From the IMG/VR virus record IMGVR_UViG_3300032782_000001, positions 186,001 to 250,000 of that record: 64,000 nucleotides of DNA, one strand, 5' to 3'. Position 1 is the stretch's first letter, and every line of letters begins with the position of its first letter. The translations under genes and the position numbers were made by a program. Below the pieces are notes generated by a model. That model saw nothing but the letters and a program-made list of their open reading frames with translations, made no database searches and was not told the DNA's origin. This document shows, piece after piece, positions 1-20,735 of this stretch.

Positions 1-1007
1 TTGCGTCGAATGTCTTCGGATGACACAGCTTCAGGAGGATGCCAGATATACGGTTTGCCTTTACAATTTGCTTTGAAATCTTGAGCAATGATCTTCAATC
101 GTTTCTTGTCTTCCGGAGAAAGTTCACCATCTCGGACCTTCCCAAAATCAAGACCGGTATAACACTGTTCAGGAGGTTTACCCGCTTTCCTGTCCTGTTC
201 ATACCAATCCGTCACGAATTTTCCATTGGAAGAATGAATGACATAGATTTGATTGCGGAGATTCTTATATTTCATCTCCAAGATTGCATAGAAAATATTC
301 TTGCCGTATAGATAACAATTGTTGTAAAGATAGTTCAGAGCAAGAGTGGTCTTGAGTTCTCCGCTGAATGCACAATGGATCCAATATTCACCCTGCCTAT
401 GTCCTTTACAAACTGAGTCCACTGGCTCGAGGCCGAATAACAACCGCCCTGCATATTGATTCGACTTCTCTTGAGCCTCATATTCATCGACTACTTCATC
501 GGCATCATCAGAGACTACTCCTTCGAGCTTCTCCCCGACCTCAATATGATAAATATGAGCCATCTTCTCATAGAGAAACGTGATGGCATCAGTGACTCCA
601 CGCATGACCTTCTTGCCGTTAATGGGCTTCTCTAGATTCCTACCATGTTCGGCAATTGCAGAAGCATCTCTGCAAGCTAATGAGAAAGCTTTGATCTGCT
701 GTTGTTCTTGCTCAGACTTGACAATAGCAAGATAATTTGTCCTGATGTAAGGCTGGGCCTTCCGGACTTCCTCTAGTCTATCGCAGACTTCAACGTCGTC
801 CAATTTCTCAAAGTATTCTTTAACCAGAGAGAAATCCGGCGGAGCGGACATCTGATCGTAGAATGTCTTGAGATAACCGACGATCTTTTTATCTTCTTCC
901 GATCGGAAGTCAAGGTTGTACTCTTGGAACCTATTCCAGTTATGGAAACAGTCTTCCCCTTCAGGAATATTGCCGACCTGGATTACGCTCCTTAAGATGC
1001 GTTCCAC
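1..1007 (-). CDS. DnaB-like (SF4) replicative helicase, 5' part (runs off window start)
   Basis: Not in the ORF track because it has no stop in the window. Manual translation from GTG at 1007 gives MERILRSVIQVGNIPEG...LLFGLEPVDSVCKGHRQGEYWIHCAFSGELKTTLALNY...NIFYAILEM..., matching DnaB motif H1 (G-x-x-x-L/V-D...G...GE...A-x-x-x-x-x-K-T) and H1a (F-x-x-LEM). The start overlaps the upstream gene's TAG by 1 nt. Confidence 0.85.
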   Translation of the reverse strand, partial: MERILRSVIQVGNIPEGEDCFHNWNRFQEYNLDFRSEEDKKIVGYLKTFYDQMSAPPDFSLVKEYFEKLDDVEVCDRLEEVRKAQPYIRTNYLAIVKSEQEQQQIKAFSLACRDASAIAEHGRNLEKPINGKKVMRGVTDAITFLYEKMAHIYHIEVGEKLEGVVSDDADEVVDEYEAQEKSNQYAGRLLFGLEPVDSVCKGHRQGEYWIHCAFSGELKTTLALNYLYNNCYLYGKNIFYAILEMKYKNLRNQIYVIHSSNGKFVTDWYEQDRKAGKPPEQCYTGLDFGKVRDGELSPEDKKRLKIIAQDFKANCKGKPYIWHPPEAVSSEDIRR

Positions 1008-1837
1008 TAGTGACTCCTCCTGAATTGTTTCTTCGGGCCAAGACCTGTTCCATATTCAGGCAATAAATCTCCTTCATCAGGTGCTGACTGAATTTTCGGG
1101 CGTGGTTTCTTTTCAGAATCACGAGCAGGTTCGCTTTGCACGAGCCTATTTTGAACCTTTGGACCGTTATCAGTCGTCGTCTGATGCGGTAATGGATCCG
1201 GATTCAATGAACTGTCGAGAGTCATTCTAGGAAGAATTCTCGGAATTCGAACTGTTGGCATAGTCGACTTAATGTAATACATTAGTGATTCGGAGTAAGC
1301 TTTGCTGCTCTCCACGAAAGGCTTGTCTAGATCTGAAAACAACCATGTTGGTTTTTCTTGATCGATCCTATAACAAACAGCCTCTTCTAGAACTTCCGCT
1401 GCAGCTTTGTTCTTATATCCAATTTTATTCAACCAAATGATGGCCAGATCGGGAGGTTCCATCAGTTCTTGAAGACTGTTATAAATATCTCCAACCCGTT
1501 CAATGACGTCCGATCCTTTTACTTGCCGAGCTTTTTTTCCCAGGTAGACGTCAAGAATTTCACTATCTGTAATGAGTTTAATGAATTTGGAGCGACTCGC
1601 GATCATGGCTAGTTTAATGATAGCCCACATATCTGGAGCAGCCGCCAAAATGAACATGGACTTACTAACAGATCGGACTGGTATCTGTTTTACATGTTCA
1701 TCTAGAACCTTCGCCATGACGATTTGAGCCGGCATGTCGCTTTTCCGTCTACGAAGGTAAGCACATTCACATTCAATGATACGTCCGTCTTTATCGACGT
1801 ACCCGATCCCACCGCACATGCAAATTTGTGGGTCCAC
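1007..1837 (-). CDS. DnaC/IstB-like helicase-loader homolog with degenerate ATPase motifs
   Basis: N-terminal Zn-ribbon CMCGGIG...IECEC; C-terminal 'DLAII...VLEEAVCYRIDQEKPTWLFSDL' mirrors the DnaC pattern 'DLLILDD...LFEII..RY...PTIITSNL'; directly upstream of the helicase. No intact Walker A or B. Confidence 0.6.
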   Translation of the reverse strand: MDPQICMCGGIGYVDKDGRIIECECAYLRRRKSDMPAQIVMAKVLDEHVKQIPVRSVSKSMFILAAAPDMWAIIKLAMIASRSKFIKLITDSEILDVYLGKKARQVKGSDVIERVGDIYNSLQELMEPPDLAIIWLNKIGYKNKAAAEVLEEAVCYRIDQEKPTWLFSDLDKPFVESSKAYSESLMYYIKSTMPTVRIPRILPRMTLDSSLNPDPLPHQTTTDNGPKVQNRLVQSEPARDSEKKPRPKIQSAPDEGDLLPEYGTGLGPKKQFRRSH

Positions 1838-1846
1838 GATTGCGAT

Positions 1847-2347
1847 TTACACCGGGTTTTTCCGAAGTTCAGCTCGAACTTGCATGATGGCTTCCCCAAG
1901 CCAATTCTTTCCACGCCAGTGCTTGGGCTGAACAGCACGCGGGTCATCTTTTTGGAGTCCGATCCCCCAAATCTTATCATTCGGACTCGCTTCAACGATG
2001 GTGGCGCTTTCTGTCTCTTCTAAAATCTTTCGGAGGCCTTCATTCTGTGAAAATTTCGCCAAATTCCCTTCGAAGACAATTTGACGACAAACGCTCGTCC
2101 ATTGTCGTTCATTAAATCCTCGGACTTGTCTACCGATTCTTTTCTGTTCGGCCGGGTCCTTGGATCGCATGATCAAAGATAAGCTGTGTTTATCGTCGAA
2201 AGTTCGGGCCTTACCGGCCATCATGAATTGTTCTGCACAGTTATATTGGCGTCCTTCAATGACAAAAGGGGAAGGATGCCATTGACTAAACGGCCCACTC
2301 CAAAAAAGAACAAATCCGCTCTCCATCTTCATTCCGTGGAAATCCAT
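1847..2347 (-). CDS. NADAR (YbiA-like) family hydrolase
   Basis: Motifs FSQWHPSPF, AEQFMMAGKA..F.D, KRIGRQVRGF, GNLAKFSQN, IVEASP.DKIWGIG, WRGKNWLGEAIMQVR. Start moved to ATG 2347, which avoids overlap with the SNF2 gene and follows a -10-like box. Confidence 0.92.
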   Translation of the reverse strand: MDFHGMKMESGFVLFWSGPFSQWHPSPFVIEGRQYNCAEQFMMAGKARTFDDKHSLSLIMRSKDPAEQKRIGRQVRGFNERQWTSVCRQIVFEGNLAKFSQNEGLRKILEETESATIVEASPNDKIWGIGLQKDDPRAVQPKHWRGKNWLGEAIMQVRAELRKNPV

Positions 2348-2366
2348 CTGGAGACCGTACGCTGAA

Positions 2367-4481
2367 TCAGATATCCGATAGATCGATCGTATGAATAACA
2401 ATGGTTTCAGCGTCATCTGCACGAATAGGCATATCGACTTCTACGGGAGTGTTTGCAACTTTCTTAGAAGGTTTTGACCGACGTGAGGCCGAAGCGATTT
2501 TCTTATTTACTTCATCGAGAAGTGTCTTCTTATCCTTATGTTCACCTCGAATGAGTTGGAAAATATCCGCAACATCATTCCCTTGTACGAACTGAAGTCC
2601 ACCCTTTAATGATTCCCCTGCTACTTTATCGGCCAGGGCTTTCTTTCCCTTGAGAGTCTTGATGACATGATCGTCAATGGTCTTCCCTCCACCCTTCTTG
2701 ACAGCAACAAGATGCGTTGCCACAACCATTAAATGCAAACTTCCAATGCGAATGGGCCGACCGGTGATTTGTACATAGTCCCCCCAACTCCATGGTGAAT
2801 CCACAAAAATGAGATGCTCGGCCGCATGGAGGTTGATAGACTCCGCTCCGGCCATCGTAATGAGGATCACATTTACGCCGGATTTCACGTCCTGGAAAAC
2901 TTTCTTGGCCTTCTCTCGGTCGGAAGCTTTGTTTTCTTTCCCCGTAATACGAACGGTCCGAATCTTTTGTTTAGCAAGCGCCTTCTCGATGAGAGAAATC
3001 ATTTTTTCGAATTTGGAAAAAATAATTACCTTGATCCCATCAAGTTCATCTTCGAGCAGCTCAAGTAATGCGTCGATCTTGCACGACGGACCATCAAAAG
3101 GATTCCCATTCTCGTCAGCAATTAAGGCGGGCGAGTCTACTGCCTGTTGAACTAACGTCATCGCCTTAAGCATTTCAGACTCGTTTGCATCCGCTTGAGA
3201 TCCAGTCTCCAAAAGACCGACTTCTGCCAGGTCATAAAGTTCTTGCTGAACATCTGAAAGCTCACATCGGAGTTCTCGAGAAACGAGTTGAGGAAGTTCC
3301 TTCGCAACCTCATGCTTCCGCCGACTAAGGTAGTACGGTTCAATAAGTTCTACGAATTTGTCGAGGTGTTTGTAACCCACGACAATCGGGACCTTCCGAC
3401 CACCGCCGATTGGTTGAAGTTTCACAACGCAAAAATCATCGTGAAATTTTTTAATAGTCGGCATTAATCCGGGTCGTACGATGCGAAACAGACTGAAGAA
3501 CTCCATCAAACGGTTTTTTACTGCTGTAGCTGTCATACCGATAATTCGATCGCATTCAGATGAGATTTCAGCCACCGTTTGATGAATACGGCCTCGATGG
3601 TTTTTCAGTACATGTTGCTCATCCATGACGAGCATAAATTTCACTTCAGGCTGTCGATTTTTTAGTTCTCGAAGATATGAAAGGAATCCAGGGGTCTTCT
3701 TGGGAGGAGCTACAATGTCTCCCAGTCTCACGATTTCAGCATCCCCTGCTTTCTGGGAATCACGCAGAGTAATTAGCTTCTGAACAAATTCCATGTCTCC
3801 TTGCGTAAGCGGAGCAGGGAGATCTCGCGATGGGGCAGAGCCCGCCAGAACGGCTCGGAGATATTCACTGGCCTCATAAGGAAGTTCTCCGAATTTCCGA
3901 CGAAATTGATCTCGCGTGGCGTCAAGAAGAACGGCCGATTCTTTCAGAGATTTCCGAAGATCTTTTAGTTGTTTGACAATGTTTTTATCCGGCTTTTGAC
4001 TCTTGTCACGGACGACAGATTCCCCGGCGTCTCGAAGAACCATGTCGTAGGTCAGAATCAATAACTTCTTCTTAGAAGGATCATGGTTCAAGAAGAAATC
4101 TTCGTAGATAACCTGACGTTCGTAGGGTTCCCCGTCTACAGTCACTGCTTCCATGTTGTGCATGAATCGAGAAGTTTCATCTGCCCATTGGAATAATGCT
4201 GATTTTTTCGTGAAGACGATAGGAACGTACTCTGGTTCCTTCATCCAAATGTAGCCGATGGTACTTAGAACTTGAAGCGTTTTACCAAGTCCTGTATCGT
4301 CTCCGAGAATCATCCGCTCCACCATGAGCATGTTCATGATGCCTTGAGCTTGATAATTCCTAATTTGGACAGGACGTTCTTCGGTCTCGTCGTGATACAC
4401 TGATTTAAGATATGGTGATGGCTTCAATTTCAAATCTTGAGCCGACCGAAGCTGACGGAGCTTCCCCAAGATCTCTTGCAT
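2367..4481 (-). CDS. SNF2-family helicase/ATPase
   Basis: IRNYQ, ILGDDTGLGKT, MDEQH, MTATAVKNRLMEFFSL, KVIIFSKF, AGAESINL..AEHLIFVD.PW, QITGRPIRIG. Probable start is ATG 4481 (MQEILGK) rather than 4571. Confidence 0.9.
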   Translation of the reverse strand: MQEILGKLRQLRSAQDLKLKPSPYLKSVYHDETEERPVQIRNYQAQGIMNMLMVERMILGDDTGLGKTLQVLSTIGYIWMKEPEYVPIVFTKKSALFQWADETSRFMHNMEAVTVDGEPYERQVIYEDFFLNHDPSKKKLLILTYDMVLRDAGESVVRDKSQKPDKNIVKQLKDLRKSLKESAVLLDATRDQFRRKFGELPYEASEYLRAVLAGSAPSRDLPAPLTQGDMEFVQKLITLRDSQKAGDAEIVRLGDIVAPPKKTPGFLSYLRELKNRQPEVKFMLVMDEQHVLKNHRGRIHQTVAEISSECDRIIGMTATAVKNRLMEFFSLFRIVRPGLMPTIKKFHDDFCVVKLQPIGGGRKVPIVVGYKHLDKFVELIEPYYLSRRKHEVAKELPQLVSRELRCELSDVQQELYDLAEVGLLETGSQADANESEMLKAMTLVQQAVDSPALIADENGNPFDGPSCKIDALLELLEDELDGIKVIIFSKFEKMISLIEKALAKQKIRTVRITGKENKASDREKAKKVFQDVKSGVNVILITMAGAESINLHAAEHLIFVDSPWSWGDYVQITGRPIRIGSLHLMVVATHLVAVKKGGGKTIDDHVIKTLKGKKALADKVAGESLKGGLQFVQGNDVADIFQLIRGEHKDKKTLLDEVNKKIASASRRSKPSKKVANTPVEVDMPIRADDAETIVIHTIDLSDI

Positions 4482-4540
4482 ATCTTCACATCTTACAGAG
4501 AGCCGATGGCATGATGGGCTCTTTCTAGAACCCATCCGGT

Positions 4541-5059
4541 ATGAACCGGAACTTCCGATCTGCCATCGCATCCGTCTTGATCGTCACGTCCGTACCTACT
4601 TTGGGCCTTTCTACAGCCGGATGTAGTTCTTGGATCAGTAACTTCAAGAAGGATCCTGTCGGTCAGATTCAGAATGTCATCCAAATCGTAGAGACAATCA
4701 TCTCTGTCGGTACTCTTGTCTTCGGCCAAGTCAAGCAAGCGCTTCCGACTGATGCTCAAGCCAAGGCTCAAGCCGATTGGGATGAAGCACTGTTGAAGGT
4801 GAACTCCGCCGTAGCGGCACTCCAATCAGCAGTAAAAGTAGCAGCTGACGCCAATCAGCCTAATCCGGATTTGAGCAAGCTCGTGACGGATCTCATGGCA
4901 GCAATCGATGCTCTCCACGCTGTTGTAAACACGTACAGTGCAAAACCTTCGACTGGTAAATTGACGGCTGCAGTGAAGCCGAAGGGATATGATTTATTCG
5001 TACAGCAGATTGCGCTTCTAAAAAGCCAATCGCCAATGATCTCGTCTTCGACGAAGTAA
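4541..5059 (+). CDS. Predicted alpha-helical lipoprotein, unknown function
   Basis: Basic N-terminus, hydrophobic stretch and lipobox-like TAG|C; the rest is amphipathic helices. One of only two plausible plus-strand genes. Confidence 0.65.
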   Translation: MNRNFRSAIASVLIVTSVPTLGLSTAGCSSWISNFKKDPVGQIQNVIQIVETIISVGTLVFGQVKQALPTDAQAKAQADWDEALLKVNSAVAALQSAVKVAADANQPNPDLSKLVTDLMAAIDALHAVVNTYSAKPSTGKLTAAVKPKGYDLFVQQIALLKSQSPMISSSTK

Positions 5060-5064
5060 TTGCC

Positions 5065-6039
5065 CTATGGGCAACACATCACGTCCTTGCCTGAAATGAC
5101 CTGTTTCAGGTTTTGGCATCCAGGGTTGGACTGCGTGGTGTGAACGCAGATTCCTGCATTGCACTTATTTTCCAGACAATCGCTGTCGTATAGACATCCC
5201 TGTCCAACATCACACCTTGCCGGGTTGACTCCACCGCAGTCGATGTCGGTTTCGTAGGTGTCTTGAGTATTGTTGGCGTACGAAGCCGGGCAGGCATATC
5301 CATTTCCGGCCGTCCCACAGAATCCGTCAAACCCGGAGTCACGGTAGCATCCTTCGCAAATGCCCACGTGTGCCCAATTCGGCGGAGGATTGGCGTAAGG
5401 GACGTACGGAGGATCGCCAGAAGTGCAGTATTGCAACTCGATGACGAAAACTCCATCAACCAAACGTTGGCACTGCCCATTTGAGTTGGGCTGCGGAACG
5501 CAGTTCTGCGTATGACCGCAGTCATCGATGTAGCTGCCACAATTGTTGGATTGGCAGACTACGTTCGGAGTCTGAGTCGGAACGCACTGATGGCACTGAT
5601 GATCAGCCCCGCAAGTATCCGAACCTGAACACGGGTTGCATTGTACGGTGTTGCCGCACCCGTCGTCCCAAGCCCCGCAATACGCAGGACTCGGGCACCC
5701 ATCGGGCACACATCCCGTTCCGCTGGAACCGCCAACTCCGGAACCGCCACCGCCACCGCCACCGCCACCGCCACCGCCACTTCCGGAGGACACGCCGGTA
5801 CCACTTCCCGAATTACTGGCGCCACCAGAAGAACCCGTAGAACCCGTGGAGTTCGCAGATGAAGCCATAGCTCCACCAGAAGAGTCCGAATTACCTCCGC
5901 CAGCATTGCCTCCGCCCGACCCAGGAGACCCTGACCCGGCGGACGTGGGCTTGGTTTGGAACAAGTCACTCGTTCCAGGATCACCACACCCGAGGACCAC
6001 CGAAACCAAAATGGAAACCAAAAACAAACCCTGATTCAT
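5065..6039 (-). CDS. Myxobacterial-style Cys-rich surface lipoprotein with Gly/Ser linker
   Basis: Lipobox VLG|C, strong SD (AAGGAGG), long G/S linker, 28 further Cys in motifs C-x-P..C...CG..DGCG...C and ETDIDCGG...C..G..C..DSDC...C...C. Visibly GC-richer than the flanks. Confidence 0.75.
   Translation of the reverse strand: MNQGLFLVSILVSVVLGCGDPGTSDLFQTKPTSAGSGSPGSGGGNAGGGNSDSSGGAMASSANSTGSTGSSGGASNSGSGTGVSSGSGGGGGGGGGGGGSGVGGSSGTGCVPDGCPSPAYCGAWDDGCGNTVQCNPCSGSDTCGADHQCHQCVPTQTPNVVCQSNNCGSYIDDCGHTQNCVPQPNSNGQCQRLVDGVFVIELQYCTSGDPPYVPYANPPPNWAHVGICEGCYRDSGFDGFCGTAGNGYACPASYANNTQDTYETDIDCGGVNPARCDVGQGCLYDSDCLENKCNAGICVHTTQSNPGCQNLKQVISGKDVMCCP
5744..5779 (+). repeat. (CCGCCA)6 microsatellite encoding a Gly12 run
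   Basis: Six perfect hexamer copies inside the lipoprotein linker. Confidence 0.95.
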
Positions 6040-6090
6040 GAACCGTATCCTCCTTTAGGATAATCAGTTCTACGAAAGGGTGTTTGGTAT

Positions 6091-9000
6091 TTACGGAGTT
6101 TCCAAAGTAGCAATGTTATGGAGCATTGCGTTACCGGAAGTAAATACTCGGTCTCCGATCACTGTAATGCTGTAACCAGTCTCGCACCCGCGGAGACCGA
6201 GAGTGCTCACACTCGATGGAGTCGTCAATGCTACCTGAAGACTTCCGGCATCAAGCTGATTGACTTTAATGTGGCCTCCAGTATTACCATTCCGAACGTC
6301 ATTCCCCATGATCAGTCCATGAGGTTTGTTATTGGCAATGCCTCCAGCAGGAATTTCGAATTGAATCTGAACCGTCGACGTGTTGTTTCCGTAACAAAGA
6401 TTGTCCAGAATTTCGAATGGAGCGCTATCGCCTGATCCAACCAAACTCATGTAAATACCGGGGACATTGAAGAATTGTCCGCAATTCGTGATGAGATTTC
6501 CGTTGATAGACACGTTAAACCAGTTTCCAATTCCAGCAGAAGCAGCAGCAATTCCGCTGTTGGAACAGTCGATGATATGATTATTGAGAAATCGAATCTG
6601 AGATACGGCGGAATCTGCAACGAACATATTGAAGCCCATGCCAACTCTGGCTTCGCTGACATGACAATTTTCAATTGTCAAGTTACTAGCAAAATTGGAG
6701 GAACCGGTGTATAGCGAACCGGTAGCCACGGATGGGATTAAGAATCCCCAAGCTTGGGTTTGAGCCGGTGCGAATCCGGGTTGACGGTATAGCTGAATAA
6801 CTGAATTAATGATGTTGATTCCGGCCAAAGGACTGGGACTAAACAACGTGGAGTCCCAAGGTTCCAAAATCACAATTGCAGATTGTGCCCAGTCTCCGGT
6901 CGATGCCGTGGTCCCCGTCATACGCAAACCATCAATGTTAGCGTAGAAGACGTTCGGAACACCGCTGGCAACACGAGGTCGTAGCCTCAACCTGTGGAAG
7001 GGTTGGCCTCCAATCCCACCCAATACGTAATCCCGAATTGAAACATCCTTCATCACGAGTTCAGACCACCGCACAATAAGATCACCCGAAGCACCAAGCT
7101 GAGGGCAACCTTGGAATTGGACTCCATTCATTTCAATATGGAACGCATTGATTGCAAATGCTGACCATGCGTTGGCGTTGATGACATCACCAACTGCACC
7201 AAGCCACCAAAGCTTGGAATCAGCAGTCATGGTTCCGGAAACTGTAGCTCCTGGAGCCCCCCTGTCGAAGCCCATAGTCACATTCCGAATGAACACACCG
7301 CCCTGACCATCACCATAAGACCCAGGCTGGATCAGGTCGGCGCCTCCGACATCCGAAATAGTGAATGGATTGAAGAAAGTCGGGACTGCCGTGCAGAACC
7401 ACCGACCTCCTTCAATTTCAAGTCTGTGAACGGCTAGATATCCAGTTCCAGCATTCTGACCATTTGTCTGAGGTTGCAAATGGATGAGGATGGAATTGAT
7501 GCCACCATTAACATTTGCGACGACTTGGCAGTTCCTGTAGAGAAGCCGACTTACTGCTACCCCGGTCAAGGCAGTGGCATCAGATCCGGCGGGGTCAACA
7601 TCAATGACTCCGCAATTTCCTACCAAGTTCCCGCCAACACCCGTAGTCGACATTAAATTGAACGAGCATCGTTCGTATTCGATGTCACCAATAAGGGTGA
7701 GAGGAACGACAGCACTGGCTGAAACGAGCTTCAACGCCGGCTGATTTTGACCAACGTTGAAGGTACAGTCTAACGCCTTGAAAGGGCCATGGACGAGCCC
7801 ATTACCCATCGTCATGGTAATGCAAGGTTTGTCGGCACTAGCATTACCAGTATTGAATACACAACGGATGAGATTATATGCACCGCCATCCGTAATTTGC
7901 AAGACGGTGCCTGAAAATAGAACGTCTTCAGCGACCAAAATGACGTTTTTGTTGACATCTACACGAGCGAAGGGGGGACCAGCATGACTAATAGTAAGAT
8001 TCTTGAGCCAAACATTGGCTCCTGATACTCCTGTCCCGAATTGGATGGCGGGAGTCACGCCATCCGTCACATTAATGACGACGCCGTCCCTATGCATTCC
8101 TTCAATGACAACGCCTTTACCATCAGCGATAGAAATAGCACCAACACCCGTATTGATATTGTAAATGCCGCTCTTGACTTGGATTCGAATATGATTGAAT
8201 GGGGTGCTGGAATTCCAGAAAGCAATAGCTTGCTGGATAGCATTTACACCGTTGAAATCACCAAAGCTAATGTTCCCGTCACCGCATGTGACAGTCCATT
8301 TTGCGTTAACACGCTTAAATAGCGTCGGAGTAGGATCTGGGTCAGCATTATCTAGAACGTGGAGATTTTCAGCATTATCCGAACCTACGGAATTCGTAAG
8401 TTGAACCGGATCGACGGTGTTTTGATCTCGGAACAGAAGAGGTCCGGTAAGACATGCAAGAGCAGTTTTGGATCCGAGTTCTGCAGACCACTCAGTGTCG
8501 GCAACGTCGAAGACGCTAAGACGGACAGCGTGTTGATCCCAGTTACTTTCGTTCCATGTACCCGCAGATAGACGACCACGGGTAGCAACGTCCATGAAAT
8601 GTTGGCTTCCGGAATCATTCCCTGGAGCCAATGAGAGTTTCGTAGCGGCCAATGAAGCAACATCTTTAGCGTACGCCGTTCCATTCCATTTGGCGTTGAC
8701 CGTAAAGATCATTCTTCCACTGTCGTCTGTATACAGACGAAATGCAACATCTGTGGGAATGGCAGGAGCAGGAATCGCAATGGATTCCCAAATCAGGGTA
8801 TACTGACCAGACGAGACCGAATGGGGAGTCAGAATTCTGGGAGCAAGCGCAACCGCAGAAGGAGTTACATCAGCACCGAGCTGAATACTGGCAGCTTGAA
8901 TGAATCGTTGGAAAATTTCAAGGACCCCCGCAGGGATTTTGCCTTGATTGTTCAGACCGGCAAATCTACCGATGTTTTGGATACCATCATTAGGGTTGGC

Positions 9001-10641
9001 AGGAATTTCCTGCCGGTTGGAGAAGAAATCTTCGGAAGTCTTTTCTTCGTTCGCGGGGACCTCTCCAAATTCCATTACTTCTGGAATGAGAATGTCCAGA
9101 CCCGTATCGAAATCATTAGATGGAGGGGTGGCGGGTTCTTCTCCAACCGAGTTAGAGTATACCCCCGCCGTTAGACCCATCTTGGCTAGGGGTGTCCCAC
9201 TCAGATTACTAACTGAAATCGTGCTAGTTAAATCTGGGTTCCTATAAAGTCCAGACAGTGTGATTTCAGCTCCACCATAAAGGGTGGCAAGAACACTCCC
9301 GTGGTACTCACCAGGAATGATCCCGAGAGTATTGAGTGCACTGAGATTCTGGTTAGGATTGAGTTGTAGAATGACGGAGGACACAGTCCCGTCAATACTG
9401 GTGCTCCGAATTTCTACAAACTTCTGACCGTTAATTGTAACGGCAGAACATGTTCCTTGAGCCGCTTGAGAAGCCGCAGCAATGGCTGCAGTAACTGTTG
9501 CCGCTACGTCCTCTGCGGTAGTCTCCGGACCCAGATTAATGACGATCGGAGCGTTATTGTTGAGAATCAGTTGAAAGTTACTAGTATTGGTAAAGTTATA
9601 TGGTTCGGGTACATTAGATGTGACAATAGCGCGTCCAGCGCCCGTTCCGAAGCCGTCCGTAGCGTTATGCCATGATTGATTGATGGCATTAATGACATCT
9701 TGAACGGAAGTAATGGTCCCGAAAGCTGTGTCTACTGTAACTGAGTAGCTGGTATCAGGATCAGCTACGACAATTCGAAGAACATCGCCGGGGCCCAGAG
9801 ATGTGAAATTGCTCTGAGTAGTGGTGATGGAAGCGGGTACGGGTCCCGTAGTGAACCAAGAAAGCTGCCAAGTTGGAGTGTATGCCTGATGAGGATCGTA
9901 AGGCTTCTGCGGACTCCAACGTAACCTAGCGTAAACTGGCTGTGCGGGTCCAATATTGGGAACGAGAGTCCTGAACCCTGTCGACAACATCTGCAAAGGA
10001 GCTGTGAGCAGGATTTGTTCACGGGGACTGTAACGAGCTTGGACTGTTCCTCCCCTACCATCAGGAGTATTTGAATTAATCCCTCGTCGAGGCCCGGAAA
10101 ACCCCGTAGCAGTGGCCGTGGTTACAAGTCCATAACCAAGAATCTGAACAATTCCGGGGGTAACATCAGTAATAGTAACAAACGCATCATCGCCAGTAGT
10201 GAAATTACTACCATGAGCGCTTCGAATTTGAAGCCGTCCGTTATTATTACTAGCAGCATTTACAGTGACGCCGAATCCCGCAAGAGTAGCATTGATACGT
10301 GCTGCAATGCGGGAGGCTGTCAAAACCGAAATAGATGAAAGAGTTACAAAATCACCAGCCTGAATCGTGACAACAATGGGATTACCACTATTGACATTGG
10401 GCATGGTAATGGAAAATTGATTTCCAGTTCCAGCTCCAAAGAATGGTTCGTTGTTCAGACCAGTGAGGTAAGCACCAACATCCAGAGCAGCACCGTCAAC
10501 AATTTGACTGACGGTGTCGTTCAGGAAGCCGTTATACTGGCCTCCAGTGAGATTCCAGACCGGCCCCGTGTGGAACGGAACGGTATGGCGTGAAAACCTA
10601 AGCTGAAGGTCATCAATTTGTTGCGCGCGAGGCCTGGTCAT
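6091..10641 (-). CDS. Tailspike/tail fibre with C-terminal right-handed beta-helix (pectin-lyase-like) region
   Basis: 'NAIQQAIA...IQVKSGIYNI...VVIEG' beta-helix entry motif followed by many N-x-I-x-x-C / I-x-G-N rungs. N-terminal half carries repeated beta-sandwich adaptor domains. Confidence 0.75.
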   Translation of the reverse strand: MTRPRAQQIDDLQLRFSRHTVPFHTGPVWNLTGGQYNGFLNDTVSQIVDGAALDVGAYLTGLNNEPFFGAGTGNQFSITMPNVNSGNPIVVTIQAGDFVTLSSISVLTASRIAARINATLAGFGVTVNAASNNNGRLQIRSAHGSNFTTGDDAFVTITDVTPGIVQILGYGLVTTATATGFSGPRRGINSNTPDGRGGTVQARYSPREQILLTAPLQMLSTGFRTLVPNIGPAQPVYARLRWSPQKPYDPHQAYTPTWQLSWFTTGPVPASITTTQSNFTSLGPGDVLRIVVADPDTSYSVTVDTAFGTITSVQDVINAINQSWHNATDGFGTGAGRAIVTSNVPEPYNFTNTSNFQLILNNNAPIVINLGPETTAEDVAATVTAAIAAASQAAQGTCSAVTINGQKFVEIRSTSIDGTVSSVILQLNPNQNLSALNTLGIIPGEYHGSVLATLYGGAEITLSGLYRNPDLTSTISVSNLSGTPLAKMGLTAGVYSNSVGEEPATPPSNDFDTGLDILIPEVMEFGEVPANEEKTSEDFFSNRQEIPANPNDGIQNIGRFAGLNNQGKIPAGVLEIFQRFIQAASIQLGADVTPSAVALAPRILTPHSVSSGQYTLIWESIAIPAPAIPTDVAFRLYTDDSGRMIFTVNAKWNGTAYAKDVASLAATKLSLAPGNDSGSQHFMDVATRGRLSAGTWNESNWDQHAVRLSVFDVADTEWSAELGSKTALACLTGPLLFRDQNTVDPVQLTNSVGSDNAENLHVLDNADPDPTPTLFKRVNAKWTVTCGDGNISFGDFNGVNAIQQAIAFWNSSTPFNHIRIQVKSGIYNINTGVGAISIADGKGVVIEGMHRDGVVINVTDGVTPAIQFGTGVSGANVWLKNLTISHAGPPFARVDVNKNVILVAEDVLFSGTVLQITDGGAYNLIRCVFNTGNASADKPCITMTMGNGLVHGPFKALDCTFNVGQNQPALKLVSASAVVPLTLIGDIEYERCSFNLMSTTGVGGNLVGNCGVIDVDPAGSDATALTGVAVSRLLYRNCQVVANVNGGINSILIHLQPQTNGQNAGTGYLAVHRLEIEGGRWFCTAVPTFFNPFTISDVGGADLIQPGSYGDGQGGVFIRNVTMGFDRGAPGATVSGTMTADSKLWWLGAVGDVINANAWSAFAINAFHIEMNGVQFQGCPQLGASGDLIVRWSELVMKDVSIRDYVLGGIGGQPFHRLRLRPRVASGVPNVFYANIDGLRMTGTTASTGDWAQSAIVILEPWDSTLFSPSPLAGINIINSVIQLYRQPGFAPAQTQAWGFLIPSVATGSLYTGSSNFASNLTIENCHVSEARVGMGFNMFVADSAVSQIRFLNNHIIDCSNSGIAAASAGIGNWFNVSINGNLITNCGQFFNVPGIYMSLVGSGDSAPFEILDNLCYGNNTSTVQIQFEIPAGGIANNKPHGLIMGNDVRNGNTGGHIKVNQLDAGSLQVALTTPSSVSTLGLRGCETGYSITVIGDRVFTSGNAMLHNIATLETP

Positions 10642-10696
10642 GATGCTCCCGTCACAGCAAAACGCACTATAGACCTAGAATAGATCAAAAGAGTAT

Positions 10697-13600
10697 TCAC
10701 AGGAGTACGTACCAGACTTCCACCACGTCAGTGACGATGAGGTTTGGAGCAGTTGGAGGATCTGGGATATACGTCAAGTCTTGATTTGTGATTCCATCAA
10801 CGGTGTAATTCAGTCCGTATGCTTGCTTGACACCATTAATCCACATAATAACTGTAGTCGGATCAACGGGCCTAAGACTGAGAGAAAACGCAGTCTGACC
10901 ATTGGTAGTCACAGGTAGAGTTTCCTGCTTCACCGAAGTCAAACTAATGTCACTGGACCCAAAGAAAATCGGATTATCGTAAATATTGTTTACGAATACC
11001 GGGGGCTCCGTCGGAATTTGAGTCAGATCAATGTTCCGACGACGCTTCTCCAAGGGACGCCCCCACACTCTGAACCTGTCCACAGCCGTATAACCTTCAT
11101 TCGTCCCATTAGCTGAATGGACGACATCAGTATCACGGAAATAAGACGGCATTGCGTGAGTCACGACTATCATCTGCAATTCGAACCCAGCGTGGACTTC
11201 AACAGAAGAAACCACTTCCGGATGGGATTTCACTAAATACGCCACACCAGCGAGAACCGAACCCGCTTCAATGTTGGGTCGAGCTCGAGGAAGCTTGGCA
11301 GAAATTACTCCGCCTGGCCACGGCCCGGTAACAGACCAAGCCGCTCCACCACGAGTGGTCTTGAAGTTGACGACATCTGAGAAACTGTTCGTTCCGTCTA
11401 CCTTTATGATGGACTCTCCGCCCACACCAGATGTGCCTGATGCATGACCACAGAGGAATTCAGTTCCCTCCCAAGTGGACTGCCCGGAGCCGATCGGAGG
11501 ATTGGAGGCCTGGAAAGCAGGGAATGAAAGAGTTCCCATGGGGATGATTCCAACACCGCTTGTACTGCGGGTTTGATAGAGGGACTTACCGACGAAGTCC
11601 TTATCGCGGAACCAAATTCCGAGCGGAAGATTGACCGTGCATCCTGCAAATTCAGGATGAACATCGCGGTCAAATACCTCAGAAATAGCCAAACGAACCG
11701 TAGAAGGCCTGGCAACAAAACCCCCATCTGGTACAACTACGGGGAATCTTGGGGTGGACCAATCTTCATAACCGGTCCTATTGGCAGAGTACCTGCGGTT
11801 CAAATCTACAATTGTTCCCGCATAATCAGGCGGCTGGCTGGGATTTTCTACCGTATTGAGCAGAGGAATTGGATTAGATCCTGAAAGCCTTCCGGTGCCA
11901 AGAGAAGTGACAAAATTCCTGGACGCCAGGACTTCAAATCCAGCTTTATTATTGAACGCGAGCGTGTTTACAGGTCCAACAGGATTTGCCTGAATACTAT
12001 TAGACTCGGACAACGCCAGCGGTCCTAACCGATAAACGTCGTCGGAATAAGCGGATTGCGTACCAAAGATATCTCCTTGATACGGAGACCGACTGTAATA
12101 AACGGTCAGTTCGTTATTGACCGAGTCCACAGACATGGGTGCAGGAGTAATGATCCCGATCTTATTGTCGCCAGTGGAAGTAAAAGTGTTAATCGGAGCT
12201 TCAATGCTTCCACCACCACTGGTTCTGGCTCCAAGGATCCGACCGTTGGTTTGCAAAAACCCGCGATCGAATCCGAAGAGAGTGCACTCAACCAGGAATT
12301 CGGAGTTATCAAATGTGGTTCCAGATGGAGCCTTCGAGAAATCGATAACATCAGCATTCAAGACGAACGTAATGTCACCGTTGTCTCCAACTTCCAATAG
12401 GAACGTTGGACCATCAAAGTCATCTTTGAGAAGATTCGTATCTGTTCCGGCTCCTCCTACAAATTTGCGATCAGTGCTAAAAGGAGAAGCCGCTGGCACA
12501 GTGGGATAGGGGCCAGGACCCGTCGTATTCCTCTTGTAAACCCCCGTAATACGAGCAGGACCATAAAATGGAGGGAACTGAATCCCACGGAAAATGCCGC
12601 CGCCTGAACCTGGAATTCGCTTATTTGAGTATTTTTGCCCGAATACTGAAGGCAGTGTTCCAGTTCCATAAGTTTCTCCAACTACAGGAGTTACAATATA
12701 ATAACCAGCCGTACTTGGATAGCTGACCAGGTTCCTATTCCAGTCGGAGCTGTCTACACCTCCAAATGGACCTTCCTTCGACATCATGATGCAGTTAATT
12801 CCTGAAGGAAACACTGCATTCGTAACTGGAACGATAGGTACATGATGCAGACCAGGCCTCGGAAGGAAGGCCATGTCGATTTCAGCGTACCTAGTTGAAA
12901 CGCCTACGAAGAACAGGTTGAGAGGGTCTACTACCGTATGAACTGTAGTATTCCCCGCTTGATTCAAATGAGGCATAGCCCCTTGGAAAGTGGGAACAAC
13001 CCCATACCAATTGAGCTGGGAACCATCTCTAACAAGGAGCGCAGGAACTAAAACATTCCTGTAAGGAGCCGCATAGACCGTCTTAGACCCTGGGTCGATC
13101 ATGACCTCAGAAGTTTTAGCAACATCTCTGTTGATCCCGGTTTGAACGTACGGGGAATCACTTAGATATGTAGGAATCATGCGATTCCGATCTGAAAGAC
13201 CGGGACGGAGGATAACTTTCGAAGAGTTCGTCGGACTGCCACGATAATGAACAGTGTGTACGTAATCTGGCCTATGAGATAACCCTCGGCCTGCTCCGTA
13301 CACAACTGCAAACTGCACATGCATGACAGTTTTAGTTGCTAAATCTGTGCTGGGAGGCGTCGGAACTGCATCCGTGAACTCTTGTAGTAATGATCCAGGA
13401 GTATTAGGGCCGAATACCCCAATAATATCAATTACAAGATTCCCAGAACCATCTAATGAAACATTCAGTCCTTGACCATGCTTCAGAATCCTTGCACCCA
13501 AAGTAACCAAATTCGGATTGGTAGAAGTGGGAGAAGTCATTAAAGGAGGCGCAGTGGGAACCCCACCATTGGGGTCCGTCGTCATTCCTTCAAATCTGAT

Positions 13601-15355
13601 TAGAACAGCGTCAGGATCCTCGGACGGTAGTACGAATCGGACCTGATCTGAATCAGAAACCGGCATACCTACTTTGAATTCATCCAGACCAATAGTGATT
13701 TGATCGCCGACATACCACCAAGGCGTCGAACCGTTGAGTCGGAAGCCGGGACCACGACCCGGAGCTGCCGCAGTCCATTCCACATTGACAGTATATGGGC
13801 TGACTGCTACTTCAATGCTGTCATCAATGGCATTGGAATTAGATGGAACTTGAACCGGGACGTCATACCTTTCAGTAACAACGGCATCCGAGAACATTCT
13901 CCGATTACCATTGGGTCCATCTAGCCTTGTCAGACCTCCGACAAAGATAGTCCCATCAGTAATCCGATCTCCGTAGAAAACAACAGTGCCAGCAGAATTG
14001 GTTGATCCGTACCTCTTCCACGCCGTACGAAGGTTCCCCTTCATGAGCTGTGTTAGAGCAGTCTCCAACATTGCTTCATAATCGAATTTATCGGCTACAG
14101 AATGGCGAAGGTCGAGAATGTCGGTGGAAGTGATCTGGTCCGCGAAAAGTCCATCCGGCCGAACAGTGTACAGGATTACTGGAGTCCCTTGCTTATGAGA
14201 TCGGACTGTGGTTTGAAGCTGACCACGATCCATTGTAACAACGAAGGATGTAGGACTCGTTTGTGTGATGTTATTAACACGGACAATTTCTTGGTTGATC
14301 TTAAAATATGCTTCACCGAAATTGTTCATCGTGGAGAGCACAGTTCCGGAAATGCTCGTCAACGTGAACTGAACGTCAGTCTCTACGATGTCATTCGGCA
14401 ACAGGACTGTGTTAGTGTAGACGGTTGCACCATCACGAGTCGTGGCCTTACTATTCCGGTTGAAGGCACCTGCAAGGTTGCCTACATCTGAAAAACCCGC
14501 CCCATTCCTTCGGAACACAACGCAAATAGGGATGGCATACGAATATCCATCCACAGTCCCGAAAGTAGTCGGGTCTCCCGACCCAGCCCTCCAAAGACCA
14601 GGATCTCCCAAGAGCTGCCGCATGTTGGTGAAAGGAACAGCACTAGGGACACTCAGGAGGCCTTGAGCAAATACGAGCGATGGATCGAATCCATCTGGAT
14701 TCTGGGCAATGTTGACATTGGTGACAACACGAATTCTATACTGAACCTGAACCCTCTTCGTGGTTTCAAAATTGACATCAGGATCAATCAAATCATCAGG
14801 GAGGAAAGAGAACCCGCCTTCCACATTCCCGAACTTGTAAATGAAACCACGTTGAGGTTTGCCAGGCGCAACGCCAGGAGGCGCCGGATCAACATCGATA
14901 CGCGCGAGCCAAGCTTCCAGGAACACAAATTCCGCTTGATTCCCGCCTGTTGAAGTATTCGGTGGGTTTAGTTGAATTCGATTCCAACTATCAACGTTAT
15001 CCGCCGCAAGAGGCGGCTGTCCAGTGCGAGTCCCCGTGACAGGAACCGGCCAACCATTTACAATAGCCCATGTAACATCACGAATCTCTTGAGGAGAATT
15101 CCTGCCAAAGTAAAATAGATTAGAATAACTTTGTTGAGTAATGAAGTCTCCCCGAGGGGATGCTTCATTCATGAGCCAACCCGAAGCGACTCGAGATCTA
15201 ACTTCCTCCGCTCGGGACTCAAGGTCGATCAGAGCAGCGAGGTTGAGCTCGGAGTCAAGAGGGGGCTTATTTCCCTGGAAGACAACTGCAGCAAGTTGCT
15301 TATCCCGGTCATCAATGAACCGGGTGACTCCAGGGCCTAGAGGGTTCGGCGGCAT
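10697..15355 (-). CDS. Large baseplate/fibre-attachment virion protein (DUF4815/DUF6519-like N-terminus), paralog of 17242..19890
   Basis: VVFQGNKPPLDSELN, FVFLEAW, DDLIDP...ETTKRVQVQYR, GTVDG..YAIPIC.VFRRN and RPDGL.ADQI...DILDLR are shared with the 882-aa protein. Confidence 0.65.
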   Translation of the reverse strand: MPPNPLGPGVTRFIDDRDKQLAAVVFQGNKPPLDSELNLAALIDLESRAEEVRSRVASGWLMNEASPRGDFITQQSYSNLFYFGRNSPQEIRDVTWAIVNGWPVPVTGTRTGQPPLAADNVDSWNRIQLNPPNTSTGGNQAEFVFLEAWLARIDVDPAPPGVAPGKPQRGFIYKFGNVEGGFSFLPDDLIDPDVNFETTKRVQVQYRIRVVTNVNIAQNPDGFDPSLVFAQGLLSVPSAVPFTNMRQLLGDPGLWRAGSGDPTTFGTVDGYSYAIPICVVFRRNGAGFSDVGNLAGAFNRNSKATTRDGATVYTNTVLLPNDIVETDVQFTLTSISGTVLSTMNNFGEAYFKINQEIVRVNNITQTSPTSFVVTMDRGQLQTTVRSHKQGTPVILYTVRPDGLFADQITSTDILDLRHSVADKFDYEAMLETALTQLMKGNLRTAWKRYGSTNSAGTVVFYGDRITDGTIFVGGLTRLDGPNGNRRMFSDAVVTERYDVPVQVPSNSNAIDDSIEVAVSPYTVNVEWTAAAPGRGPGFRLNGSTPWWYVGDQITIGLDEFKVGMPVSDSDQVRFVLPSEDPDAVLIRFEGMTTDPNGGVPTAPPLMTSPTSTNPNLVTLGARILKHGQGLNVSLDGSGNLVIDIIGVFGPNTPGSLLQEFTDAVPTPPSTDLATKTVMHVQFAVVYGAGRGLSHRPDYVHTVHYRGSPTNSSKVILRPGLSDRNRMIPTYLSDSPYVQTGINRDVAKTSEVMIDPGSKTVYAAPYRNVLVPALLVRDGSQLNWYGVVPTFQGAMPHLNQAGNTTVHTVVDPLNLFFVGVSTRYAEIDMAFLPRPGLHHVPIVPVTNAVFPSGINCIMMSKEGPFGGVDSSDWNRNLVSYPSTAGYYIVTPVVGETYGTGTLPSVFGQKYSNKRIPGSGGGIFRGIQFPPFYGPARITGVYKRNTTGPGPYPTVPAASPFSTDRKFVGGAGTDTNLLKDDFDGPTFLLEVGDNGDITFVLNADVIDFSKAPSGTTFDNSEFLVECTLFGFDRGFLQTNGRILGARTSGGGSIEAPINTFTSTGDNKIGIITPAPMSVDSVNNELTVYYSRSPYQGDIFGTQSAYSDDVYRLGPLALSESNSIQANPVGPVNTLAFNNKAGFEVLASRNFVTSLGTGRLSGSNPIPLLNTVENPSQPPDYAGTIVDLNRRYSANRTGYEDWSTPRFPVVVPDGGFVARPSTVRLAISEVFDRDVHPEFAGCTVNLPLGIWFRDKDFVGKSLYQTRSTSGVGIIPMGTLSFPAFQASNPPIGSGQSTWEGTEFLCGHASGTSGVGGESIIKVDGTNSFSDVVNFKTTRGGAAWSVTGPWPGGVISAKLPRARPNIEAGSVLAGVAYLVKSHPEVVSSVEVHAGFELQMIVVTHAMPSYFRDTDVVHSANGTNEGYTAVDRFRVWGRPLEKRRRNIDLTQIPTEPPVFVNNIYDNPIFFGSSDISLTSVKQETLPVTTNGQTAFSLSLRPVDPTTVIMWINGVKQAYGLNYTVDGITNQDLTYIPDPPTAPNLIVTDVVEVWYVLL

Positions 15356-15441
15356 CTCAGGTTGACTCCGTCATCTTGACCGTGCTCAAAGAGACGGTCT
15401 GCATTACCGCCCCATGAACGGCCTACGCCCACCATACCCGG

Positions 15442-16089
15442 TCATTGATAAAGAAACGTCCAGTCAGATAAATACCAAATATGGTTCGGGTCGTTGTTTG
15501 TGAAACGGAGTCTAAAGTTGAAATTTGGACCCCCAGCAAATGGAACCTTCACATCTGGGCTAAGAGTAAAAAGCGTCGAAGTATCAGTGGTATCTCTAAC
15601 TTCAGCCAAAAATATGTTCGGATCAAAATCCGTAAACATGCTTGTGACTGTATCCCAGTTGTAAAGAGCTGGAGGCGCAGGAGTGGATGGTGCGTTAGTA
15701 GGTTCCGTCGAAGGAAAAAACAAAAACGCATACCAATGAGCAAAAATCTGCGTAAAAGCGGGAGTTATGGTCAAAATATTAGTTGTGATCCATCCTTGTT
15801 GGAGGATCAAGCTTCTTTTATTAGGACCCACTCCATATCGATACGATTTAGTGGAATCGATATTTGGAGTAGTTAACAATTCGTCATTCAAACCATCTAC
15901 CATCCCCTGAGATTGAATGAAAGCAGTCGTCTTGGCGCTGATGAGATCGGAAACGGAATCTGTAGAAGCTTGGACCCCCACACTGTCAGGGACATCAATA
16001 ACATATCGTCCGGAAATAGAAAAATTTAAAGGCGCCAGGTAAGTGCCTCGAATTTTGTTTGTTTGAGAATCAACCAAAATCTTGGTCAT
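15442..16089 (-). CDS. Hypothetical virion protein
   Basis: 215-aa beta-rich ORF tightly coupled to the fibre genes. Confidence 0.6.
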   Translation of the reverse strand: MTKILVDSQTNKIRGTYLAPLNFSISGRYVIDVPDSVGVQASTDSVSDLISAKTTAFIQSQGMVDGLNDELLTTPNIDSTKSYRYGVGPNKRSLILQQGWITTNILTITPAFTQIFAHWYAFLFFPSTEPTNAPSTPAPPALYNWDTVTSMFTDFDPNIFLAEVRDTTDTSTLFTLSPDVKVPFAGGPNFNFRLRFTNNDPNHIWYLSDWTFLYQ

Positions 16090-16090
16090 A

Positions 16091-19890: not shown

Positions 19891-20014
19891 CCGTCTTCCT
19901 ACCCACCGAGGACAATAAGAACTCCCTTCATCCTACCAGACAGGAAGTTCAACTAGCACGATGGGATGGCGCGCAAAAAAGACAAATGCATCGCCAACCG
20001 GTCTTTGATGTTTA

Positions 20015-20674
20015 CTAAAAGGTAAGACGCCAAGTCCAGCTAAGAGTGCTAGTCGGGGGCTTGGATATAGCCGGAAAGGTTACATAATTTACAAGAGTGT
20101 CCTTTCCGACCAAGTTGACTGTTGGATCGTAGGTTCCATTTGGAGGAAGGACAGGATTTGTAACAGACATATTAGTGTCGACGTCGCCCCCAAGGAGCCC
20201 CATTTCAGTGAGAACGCCGACAGCTTCGGACTCGGAATACGTTGTCGTAAAATCTACAACATTCGTCGGAACACCAGAAATGGCTCCATCTCCATCAATG
20301 AAACTAGTTGTGGCGATTTGTTTACGTGCCAATTCATTGAAAAGGGACCGTTGAGTATTCGTTGCAGGAGGTGGATTGAGCGGATTCCAGCCAATATCGC
20401 CCGTACCAACGGCCAGAGCGAATACCCCAAAGTTAGGTTCACATTGATGGGCAATTGGGGCCCCAGTTCCCTTCATGAGACGAGCAATCAAGATACTTGC
20501 ATCCAATGTCACAACATTCAGTTTGCCGCCTTTGGTAACCCCGGTCTGGGCATCTCGGAGCTCCCAGAAGATCTCACCTTTGATTTTGCAACCGTAATAG
20601 TGGTCATGTAGCAGGGTCTTGAGGACAAAGGAGAATGCGGCATCCTTCGCCTTCTTGAATTTTTGCTGGATCAT
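20015..20674 (-). CDS. Baseplate/tail-collar fibre-attachment protein (DUF3751-like pattern)
   Basis: LAVGTG...TQRSLFNELARK...EAVG.LTEMGL pattern typical of phage fibre-anchoring subunits; SD AGGAG upstream. Confidence 0.55.
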   Translation of the reverse strand: MIQQKFKKAKDAAFSFVLKTLLHDHYYGCKIKGEIFWELRDAQTGVTKGGKLNVVTLDASILIARLMKGTGAPIAHQCEPNFGVFALAVGTGDIGWNPLNPPPATNTQRSLFNELARKQIATTSFIDGDGAISGVPTNVVDFTTTYSESEAVGVLTEMGLLGGDVDTNMSVTNPVLPPNGTYDPTVNLVGKDTLVNYVTFPAISKPPTSTLSWTWRLTF

Positions 20675-20735
20675 CCGGTTCTCCTATCGACCCTACCATC
20701 CCATGAGTGTCTTAAAAGAAGAACACGTATAAAAA

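Follow-up and report, generated by a model that had tools for sequence, protein, structure and literature searches.

A cysteine-rich lipoprotein encoded behind a tailspike-like gene in a clade of huge phages: a conserved gene with a possible role in blocking adsorption

Why does a huge environmental phage encode a cysteine-rich lipoprotein that resembles proteins of bacterial hosts, and was the gene taken from such a host? The locus in question lies in a 64,000-nucleotide (nt) stretch of DNA (hereafter, the window) that spans bases 186,001-250,000 of the IMG/VR virus record IMGVR_UViG_3300032782_000001. This record, which we refer to as G000, is a 436,316-bp phage genome with direct terminal repeats, and is 100% complete according to CheckV. 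The gene occupies positions 5065-6039 of the window, and its product is referred to as P0001; L-numbers denote the contigs or loci with which it was compared, and coordinates are window positions unless marked G000:C1. All translations were made without an alternative genetic code. The initial annotation of the window, made from the sequence alone, had presented P0001 as acquired from a Myxococcota host and possibly active in superinfection exclusion or cell-cell recognition. We found that P0001 is a genuine, conserved gene of a huge-phage clade and not recent cargo, and that it diverges at the same rate as the gene directly upstream of it, which probably encodes a tailspike. By analogy with known exclusion lipoproteins, we tentatively suggest that P0001 may act at the outer membrane to block adsorption.

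The lipoprotein, its phage relatives and its tailspike-like neighbour

P0001 consists of a signal peptide with lipobox, a Gly/Ser-rich linker and a Cys-rich head (Table 1). Its start was placed at the ATG at 6039, because in-frame TAG, TGA and TAA codons in the 51 nt before this ATG block earlier starts. The architecture proposed in the initial annotation was borne out (lipobox Cys18, a linker of about 90 amino acids (aa) and a 216-aa head), and the strong Shine-Dalgarno sequence described there as the gene's own is present, as are the motifs DGCG (residues 126-129) and ETDIDCGG (residues 263-270). The even number of 28 Cys that had been counted is right for the mature head, where all of them fall within residues 110-323; the whole protein has 29, including the lipobox Cys18. 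At 8.9%, the Cys content of P0001 is the second highest among the 446 open reading frames (ORFs) of G000 (median 1.4%), and its V-L-G-C is the only strict lipobox match in the 436-kb genome. P0001 has no match in Pfam (E ≤ 0.1), PHROGs (E ≤ 0.01), NCBIfam or PADLOC, and no catalytic domain was found with Pfam and NCBIfam. A sequence search of the PDB returned noise only (E > 1), and P0001 is unmatched among 50,697 GenBank phages.

Protein searches covering 5.8 and 15 billion proteins yielded only two near-full-length relatives of P0001; following neighbouring genes and searching IMG/VR added four more. These relatives are 64% (L175, from JGI), 59% (L002, from an NCBI metagenome), 55% (L174, a 22-kb Logan contig), 42% (L004, also from Logan), 35% (L010, a 140-kb IMG/VR contig) and 33% (L011, IMG/VR) identical to P0001, and the GC content of the contigs that carry them ranges from 0.46 to 0.63. 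The relatives of G000 include IMGVR_UViG_3300032053_000010, IMGVR_UViG_3300022562_002170 and contigs of SRR6262212, SRR16915475 and GCA_037024535.1. Gene calls in two of the relatives are truncated, and the open frames restore the linker in L002 and the full signal and linker in L004. A lipobox at residues 15-21 is found in all six visible N-termini (P0001, L175, L174, L004, L010 and L011); Gly or Ala precedes the invariant Cys at position -1 in each of the six, and none has Asp or Lys at +2. Across the seven sequences 24 Cys columns are invariant, and non-synonymous divergence (dN) within the family is 0.25-0.33 with synonymous divergence (dS) saturated; the reading frame is therefore real. 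The invariant Cys and the low dN also fit a predicted oxidised, extracytoplasmic fold under purifying selection. Further members were sought in scans of metagenomes and species genomes, which gave 160 loci, all of them cellular repeat proteins without phage synteny.

Gene order at the locus is kept as well. The 1552-aa tail protein comes first, then the 1516-aa tailspike-like protein and the Cys lipoprotein; the SNF2 helicase comes last, in some loci after one or two small genes. L174 has the order SNF2, 173-aa lipoprotein, 290-aa Cys lipoprotein and 1517-aa fibre; L010 and L011 each have the homologues of the 1552-aa and 1516-aa proteins followed by the Cys lipoprotein; and L004, L175 and L002 show the same order in partial form. 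P0001 starts 51 nt after the tailspike-like gene, and the two genes are adjacent in the same way in L174, L010 and L011. In LR745208.1, an uncultured 485-kb phage that is the nearest relative of G000 in GenBank, no lipoprotein was found at the corresponding place. The presence of the gene at the same locus in phages whose contigs differ so widely in GC content (0.46-0.63) indicates that it has travelled with the phage lineage across hosts or over long times. As a recent event, acquisition from a Myxococcota host is thus not supported: the best, and the only full-length, homologues of P0001 (33-64% identity) belong to related phages, where they occupy this same locus.

We found that the lipoprotein and the tailspike-like gene diverge at a matching rate, while the flanking genes stay 60-68% identical. 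In the comparison with L174 the fibre is 54.7% and the Cys lipoprotein 51.4% identical, with flanking genes at 67.5% and 67.6%; the corresponding values are 28.5% and 29.6% for L011 (flanking genes 68.4% and 60%), and 29.6% and 29.5% for L010 (flanking gene 60.4%). The 1552-aa tail protein that heads the block is 60-68% identical in L010 and L011.

The 1516-aa protein is unmatched among GenBank phages, and its nature was assessed from its predicted structure. In its C-terminal half (residues 774-1516), short repetitive strands come after a conserved cap motif, and language-model comparison matches residues 760-1515 to viral Beta_helix/NosD clusters (0.95). An AlphaFold2 (AF2) model of residues 774-1516 has a predicted template-modelling score (pTM) of 0.70 and a mean predicted local distance difference test score (pLDDT) of 58. 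When this model was searched with Foldseek, only right-handed beta-helix proteins were matched, all weakly (template-modelling score (TM) 0.15-0.25, E 2e-4 to 4e-2); among them are the tailspikes of Sf6, CBA120, HK620, LKA1 and Pam1, PL6 lyases and chondroitinase B. On these models, the reading that fits best is that of a giant receptor-binding protein of tailspike-like type.

Cellular relatives, base composition and the host

Only about 45-70 of the 324 residues of P0001 match cellular proteins, at 30-60% identity. The ETD[IV]DCGG module (about 45 aa) was found with phmmer in 805 proteins at E ≤ 1e-3, of which 160 reach E ≤ 1e-10, and it mostly occurs in 4-26 tandem copies. P0001 has a single copy, in which residues 250-298 fit the pattern ..ETD[VI]DCGG..C..G..C....DC....C....C, and has neither a tandem array nor a further domain. 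Neither Pfam nor NCBIfam has a model for this repeat. A lipoprotein encoded on a contig of GC 0.70, P0111, contains a threefold repeat to which the first head module (CVP..C..CG..DGCG..C) can be aligned (E 1e-12). Apart from this match of the DGCG module, head residues 110-250 and 299-324 have relatives in phages only, and the 160 cellular loci have nothing else in common with the phage. P0001 is, as far as these alignments go, a phage-specific assembly of small, putatively disulfide-bonded modules.

Carrier taxonomy was taken from the 80 best named loci on one-genome-per-species contigs. Myxococcota account for 53 of these, and eight unresolved loci bear the labels 'Deltaproteobacteria' (six) and 'Proteobacteria' (two); a further 13 are archaeal, two belong to the candidate phyla radiation (CPR) and four to others. 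The Myxococcota carriers comprise Polyangiaceae, Sorangium, Minicystis, Labilithrix, Nannocystis, Myxococcaceae and Bradymonadales, and single genomes can hold many copies of the module (Minicystis 22, Labilithrix 13, Nannocystis 6). Carriers elsewhere include Methanosarcinales, DPANN, Altiarchaeota, CPR bacteria, Actinomycetota and Bacteroidota, and phmmer gave its best match of all to a protein from the green alga Chromochloris zofingiensis, which has more than 20 copies. Metagenomic carriers lie mostly on high-GC contigs, and many of them are lipoproteins. Structural look-alikes of P0001 in the ESM Atlas are nearly all Cys-rich proteins of Myxococcota; they are weak (TM about 0.3) and serve as leads only. 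The cellular reservoir of the head modules is therefore mainly, though not solely, Myxococcota. Two statements of the initial annotation fared differently here: the abundance of the architecture in myxobacteria stood for the module, which is however not exclusive to them (archaea, CPR, green alga), while the expectation that the best homologues would be found in Myxococcota did not, as the best full-length homologues are those of related phages and the top phmmer match is from Chromochloris.

Lipoproteins and secreted proteins of the Myxococcota type with ETD[VI]DCGG repeats (for instance P0003 and P0004, which also carry F5/8 type C domains, and P0019 from a Myxococcales metagenome-assembled genome) share with P0001 a lipoprotein signal, a low-complexity linker and the six-Cys module with the same spacing, at 30-60% module identity. 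They differ from it in having 4-26 modules rather than one, and P0001 has no attached binding or catalytic domain.

The raised GC content noted for P0001 is real (0.568, where the window has 0.474 and the genome 0.50). We examined it by codon position across the 446 ORFs of G000. GC at second codon positions (GC2) is 0.594, at the 97th percentile, and reaches 0.86 in the linker alone; GC at third positions (GC3) is 0.563, at the 77th percentile (z 0.7). With GC2 high and GC3 unremarkable within G000, the excess can be put down to the amino acids encoded (codons for Gly, Ser, Cys and Pro), and the raised GC does not mark the gene as foreign. The window has a second high-GC peak, at 37797-40550 on the minus strand (GC 0.58-0.61); it is due to the gene for a 917-aa collagen-like tail fibre protein with strong PHROG matches, and is again an effect of Gly and Pro codons.

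Other signals bear on the host of G000. In GenBank, the two best matches are the same for the large terminase subunit (TerL), for the SNF2 helicase and for the N-terminus of the 1552-aa tail protein: the uncultured 485-kb phage (32-41% identity) and Tunturiibacter phage Tunturi_5 (28-32%). Tunturi_5, the closest cultured phage, is a 309-kb myovirus of Acidobacteriota with 43 tRNAs; at 28-32% identity, the two phages need not share a host phylum. The low GC of the phage is compatible with a Myxococcota host, as myxophages linked to their hosts by clustered regularly interspaced short palindromic repeats (CRISPR) are reported with GC as low as 46-51% (preprint 10.64898/2026.09.14.751636). A search for spacer-like matches between window 1-20000 and 401 Myxococcota genomes matched only the poly-Gly hexanucleotide repeat (5743-5780), and window 6100-26000 gave no spacer-like match in the same genomes, which is a weak test. 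Since each search covered 20 kb of 436 kb, with two candidates scored per genome, this null result is no evidence against a Myxococcota host. We also considered as a foreign host clue an AAA_5 ATPase gene with GC3 0.91 (G000:C1:25,877-27,001; L007:877-2001), which was rejected: it has no close relative in species genomes, and homologues at 55-73% identity occur on many 360-430-kb contigs, so that it is a core gene of a large huge-phage clade and carries no host signal. The strong Shine-Dalgarno sequence and the lipobox indicate a bacterial host with standard lipoprotein processing. P0001 itself is a weak host clue, which points towards bacteria with Myxococcota-like secreted proteins and does not settle the matter.

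Gene neighbourhood and genome setting

From 6 to 64 kb of the window, nearly all large genes lie on the minus strand, and they include tail and baseplate genes, encoding a baseplate-wedge homologue, the collagen-like tail fibre and other tail proteins. P0001 is accordingly the last gene of a tail module, and the SNF2 helicase gene follows it.

Table 1. Features of the P0001 locus (window coordinates).
Feature	Position	Strand	Remark
P0001 coding sequence, 324-aa Cys-rich lipoprotein, stop codon included	5065..6039	-	Kept in seven phage loci
Shine-Dalgarno sequence AAGGAGG, 9 nt before ATG	6049..6055	-	
Signal peptide and lipobox V-L-G-C, residues 1-18	5986..6039	-	Cys18 is the predicted lipidated residue; +2 is Gly
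Gly/Ser-rich linker, presumably disordered, residues 19-108	5716..5985	-	GC2 0.86; about 60-170 aa across homologues
Perfect (GGCGGT)x6.3 hexanucleotide repeat (coding strand), encoding the G12 run	5743..5780	-	In frame, slippage-prone
Disulfide-rich head (disulfides predicted), residues 109-324, 28 Cys	5068..5715	-	24 Cys invariant in seven sequences
Two CVP..C..CG..D(D/G)CG..C modules, residues 110-137 and 152-180	5500..5712	-	Short Cys loop between them
Single ETD[IV]DCGG six-Cys module, residues 250-298	5146..5292	-	805 protein matches at E ≤ 1e-3
Giant fibre/tailspike-like protein, 1516 aa, upstream of P0001	6091..10641	-	Flagellin-IN-like repeats (N-terminal half), predicted right-handed beta-helix (C-terminal half)
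Tail protein, 1552 aa, heading the three-gene block	10697..15355	-	PHROG 1101 'tail protein'; Tunturi_5 'tail fiber protein'; phage G gp420
Helical 172-aa protein with looser lipobox T-A-G-C at Cys28	4541..5059	+	Convergent to P0001
SNF2-family helicase, other flank of the locus	2367..4571	-	Syntenic in L004, L174, L175 and L011

The gene for the 172-aa protein is the only plus-strand gene of the tail module, and its stop codon lies 5 nt from that of P0001. L002, L174 and L175 each have a homologue (64-68% identity) in the corresponding position, and L004, L010 and L011 have none; the protein has no family match in Pfam or PHROG. This lipoprotein-like protein may be a second, separately timed player.

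Downstream of the Cys lipoprotein, L010 and L011 carry a conserved, N-terminally anchored membrane protein (L010:10485-11818; L011:10562-11859), after which comes an endolysin with PG_binding_1 and Peptidase_M15_4 domains in L010, and in L011 a protein that has a signal peptide and a barrel-like C-terminus. G000 lacks homologues of these downstream proteins. Its single PG_binding_1 protein, the likely endolysin, is encoded at 415 kb, 224 kb from P0001, which thus lies outside the lysis region, and no i-spanin or lysis-cassette neighbours of P0001 were found within the window.

The genome as a whole has 48 tRNA genes and a transfer-messenger RNA (tmRNA). About 45 of the tRNA genes form a cluster, with the tmRNA (tag ANDNGALRIAA), outside the window (G000:C1:97,491-115,165; 139,122-139,296; 141,433-141,807), and two adjacent tRNAs with anticodon TCA, labelled SeC by ARAGORN, could be opal suppressors. 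The terminal region (L009; G000:C1:429,000-436,316) has GC 0.63-0.69 and no convincing genes; it contains a DNA element repeated at least five times, which is seen as a recurring H-R-R-H-L-R-P-G-I-R in junk ORFs. Inteins interrupt replication genes of related huge phages: the DnaB gene of L174 (L174:4223-7045) has Intein_splicing and LAGLIDADG domains by Pfam, and the genes for an SNF2 helicase and a UvrD-like helicase in LR745208.1 (L092:1555-4548 and 4642-9867) contain long insertions that look intein-like by eye. The SNF2 gene of the window has no intein-like insertion.

A possible role in adsorption, weighed against alternatives

Genes for exclusion lipoproteins adjoin the receptor-binding gene on its downstream side, as in T5, where llp follows the gene for pb5, and in many coliphages, where such genes follow gpJ; T5 Llp and the Cor-like lipoproteins act at the outer membrane and stop adsorption (PMC9586334). 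Because P0001 lies directly downstream of a tailspike-like gene, the classical place for an exclusion lipoprotein, the role in superinfection exclusion put forward in the initial annotation is plausible; its position speaks for it, and the function is drawn from analogy. The explanation that we find the best, and to which we give somewhat less than an even chance, is that P0001 may sit in the outer membrane as a lipoprotein, evolve in concert with the tailspike and block adsorption by a logic like that of Llp and Cor. P0001 would be exported via Sec and lipidated at Cys18, and would be sorted to the outer membrane since Gly, and neither Asp nor Lys, stands at +2. A flexible linker some 90 aa long could then allow a compact 216-aa head, locked by up to 14 predicted disulfides, to reach its target, and the head may bind the host surface structure recognised by the tailspike, or a partner of that structure. 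Infected cells, debris and vesicles would in that case no longer adsorb phage, so that superinfection would be excluded and progeny would be spared wasteful adsorption. Given a probable late transcript shared with the structural genes, protection of progeny may outweigh early exclusion.

P0001 resembles T5 Llp and Cor (of T1, phi80 and N15) in being a phage lipoprotein whose gene lies directly downstream of a receptor-binding or tail-tip gene, in its disulfides (predicted in P0001), and in its presumed action at the outer membrane. It differs from them in having 28 Cys rather than one disulfide, a 90-aa linker and about five times the size, and in its probably late rather than early expression; moreover, its neighbour is a putative beta-helix tailspike, a type that usually targets glycans, rather than a protein that binds a TonB-dependent transporter. 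Judged from sequence and gene position, P0001 is Llp/Cor-like in where it is encoded and in its anchor, and is no member of the Llp/Cor family.

Adsorption blocking needs to be considered cautiously, as several observations weigh against it. P0001 has no sequence similarity to Llp or Cor by Pfam and PHROG, and proteins of that type have about 60-80 aa, compared with 306 aa for mature P0001. T5 llp is an early gene, whereas P0001 is apparently co-transcribed with late structural genes, as neither a sigma70-like promoter nor a terminator was found in the 51-nt gap upstream of it. A polysaccharide target of the tailspike would pose a further difficulty, as it is hard to see how a head made of protein could mask one. 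The matched divergence was seen in three comparisons, and weak constraint on both genes might be enough to explain it. The PROSITE lipoprotein rule PS51257 requires at least one Lys or Arg among the first seven residues; the n-region of P0001 (M-N-Q-G) has neither and fails this clause, which the five other N-termini all pass. The head could not be modelled, AF2 with a five-sequence alignment giving pLDDT 48 and pTM 0.28, and this unusable model was kept out of the fold search. Finally, in L010 an endolysin is encoded two genes away from the Cys lipoprotein.

That last observation bears on a reading of P0001 as a lysis or egress accessory, an outer-membrane lipoprotein that breaches the envelope as an oversized o-spanin or as some other disruptor. 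An o-spanin of the lambda Rz1 type is a short outer-membrane lipoprotein, with its gene in or adjoining the i-spanin gene in the lysis cassette, and P0001 would share with o-spanins the outer-membrane lipoprotein anchor (predicted for P0001) and the presence of Cys. The membrane protein that precedes the L010 endolysin is kept in L011, whereas G000, L174, L175 and L004, which make up four of the six loci, have no such membrane-protein, i-spanin or endolysin linkage. G000 lacks a homologue of the L010 membrane protein and encodes its only PG_binding_1 protein far away, and a mature protein of 306 aa with 28 Cys is unlike the short, Pro-rich spanins with one to three Cys in both size and composition. 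We consider a role in lysis improbable. A role at the envelope apart from the tailspike receptor, as an adhesin or lectin-like binder, a decoy against phages or predators, or an envelope stabiliser, is unlikely, though less so than lysis. Cellular DCGG modules serve as stalks for binding or enzyme domains, such as the F5/8 type C domains of P0003 and P0004, and look-alike clusters carry CBM_3, ricin, fibrinogen_C and trypsin domains, while P0001 has no detectable catalytic domain; such a role would, however, leave unexplained both the fixed position behind the tailspike gene and the matched divergence of the two. It has also to be asked whether P0001 is a lipoprotein at all, as its hydrophobic N-terminus might be a membrane anchor or a signal that stays uncleaved, P0001 then being a factor for the assembly of virions or tail fibres. 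The n-region without Lys or Arg and the position of the gene at the end of a structural operon are in keeping with this, which we nevertheless hold to be a shade less probable even than the lysis reading: the invariant Cys follows Gly or Ala in every visible N-terminus, the other five N-termini have Lys or Arg, and tails are assembled in the cytoplasm, where a head with 28 conserved Cys would stay unoxidised.

The reading in which P0001 is recent cargo from a Myxococcota host that remodels cell-cell recognition and spreads to neighbouring cells through TraAB exchange is very improbable. It has in its favour that the C-terminal module is commonest in Myxococcota, that the weak ESM Atlas look-alikes come almost entirely from this phylum, and that many metagenomic module carriers are lipoproteins on high-GC contigs; the GC of CRISPR-linked myxophages would also accommodate G000. 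TraAB exchange of outer-membrane lipoproteins is documented in Myxococcus, and anchoring in the outer membrane as a lipoprotein is all that transfer is known to require (PMC3325183, PMC5562445). P0001 shares such anchoring, by prediction, with the SitA-type toxins and other TraAB cargo of Myxococcus; unlike the SitA-type toxins, to which it has no sequence relation, it has no toxin domain and no immunity gene. Against the cargo reading stand the ordinary GC3, the age and synteny of the gene within the phage clade, and the confinement of cellular matches to a module of about 45-70 aa that is also archaeal, CPR and algal. The nearest cultured phage infects Acidobacteriota, and the spacer-like search of window 6100-26000 in 401 Myxococcota genomes, a weak test, gave no match. 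The two ideas could be combined in a phage of a TraAB-bearing myxobacterium whose exclusion lipoprotein passes to uninfected kin, so that resistance to adsorption, or some other surface change, spreads ahead of infection; this we regard as scarcely probable, and the spread of P0001 between cells by myxobacterial membrane exchange is speculation.

If P0001 does block adsorption, the pairing of exclusion lipoproteins with receptor-binding proteins would no longer be confined to small coliphage proteins and would reach huge environmental phages; with P0001 it would gain a form that is large, modular and rich in disulfides and that evolves together with a tailspike. The tailspike and the lipoprotein would then constitute a matched pair for finding the receptor and host of this uncultured clade of 436-kb phages. 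The analysis also flags an uncurated family of six-Cys repeats that is common to phages, Myxococcota, several archaeal lineages and a green alga.

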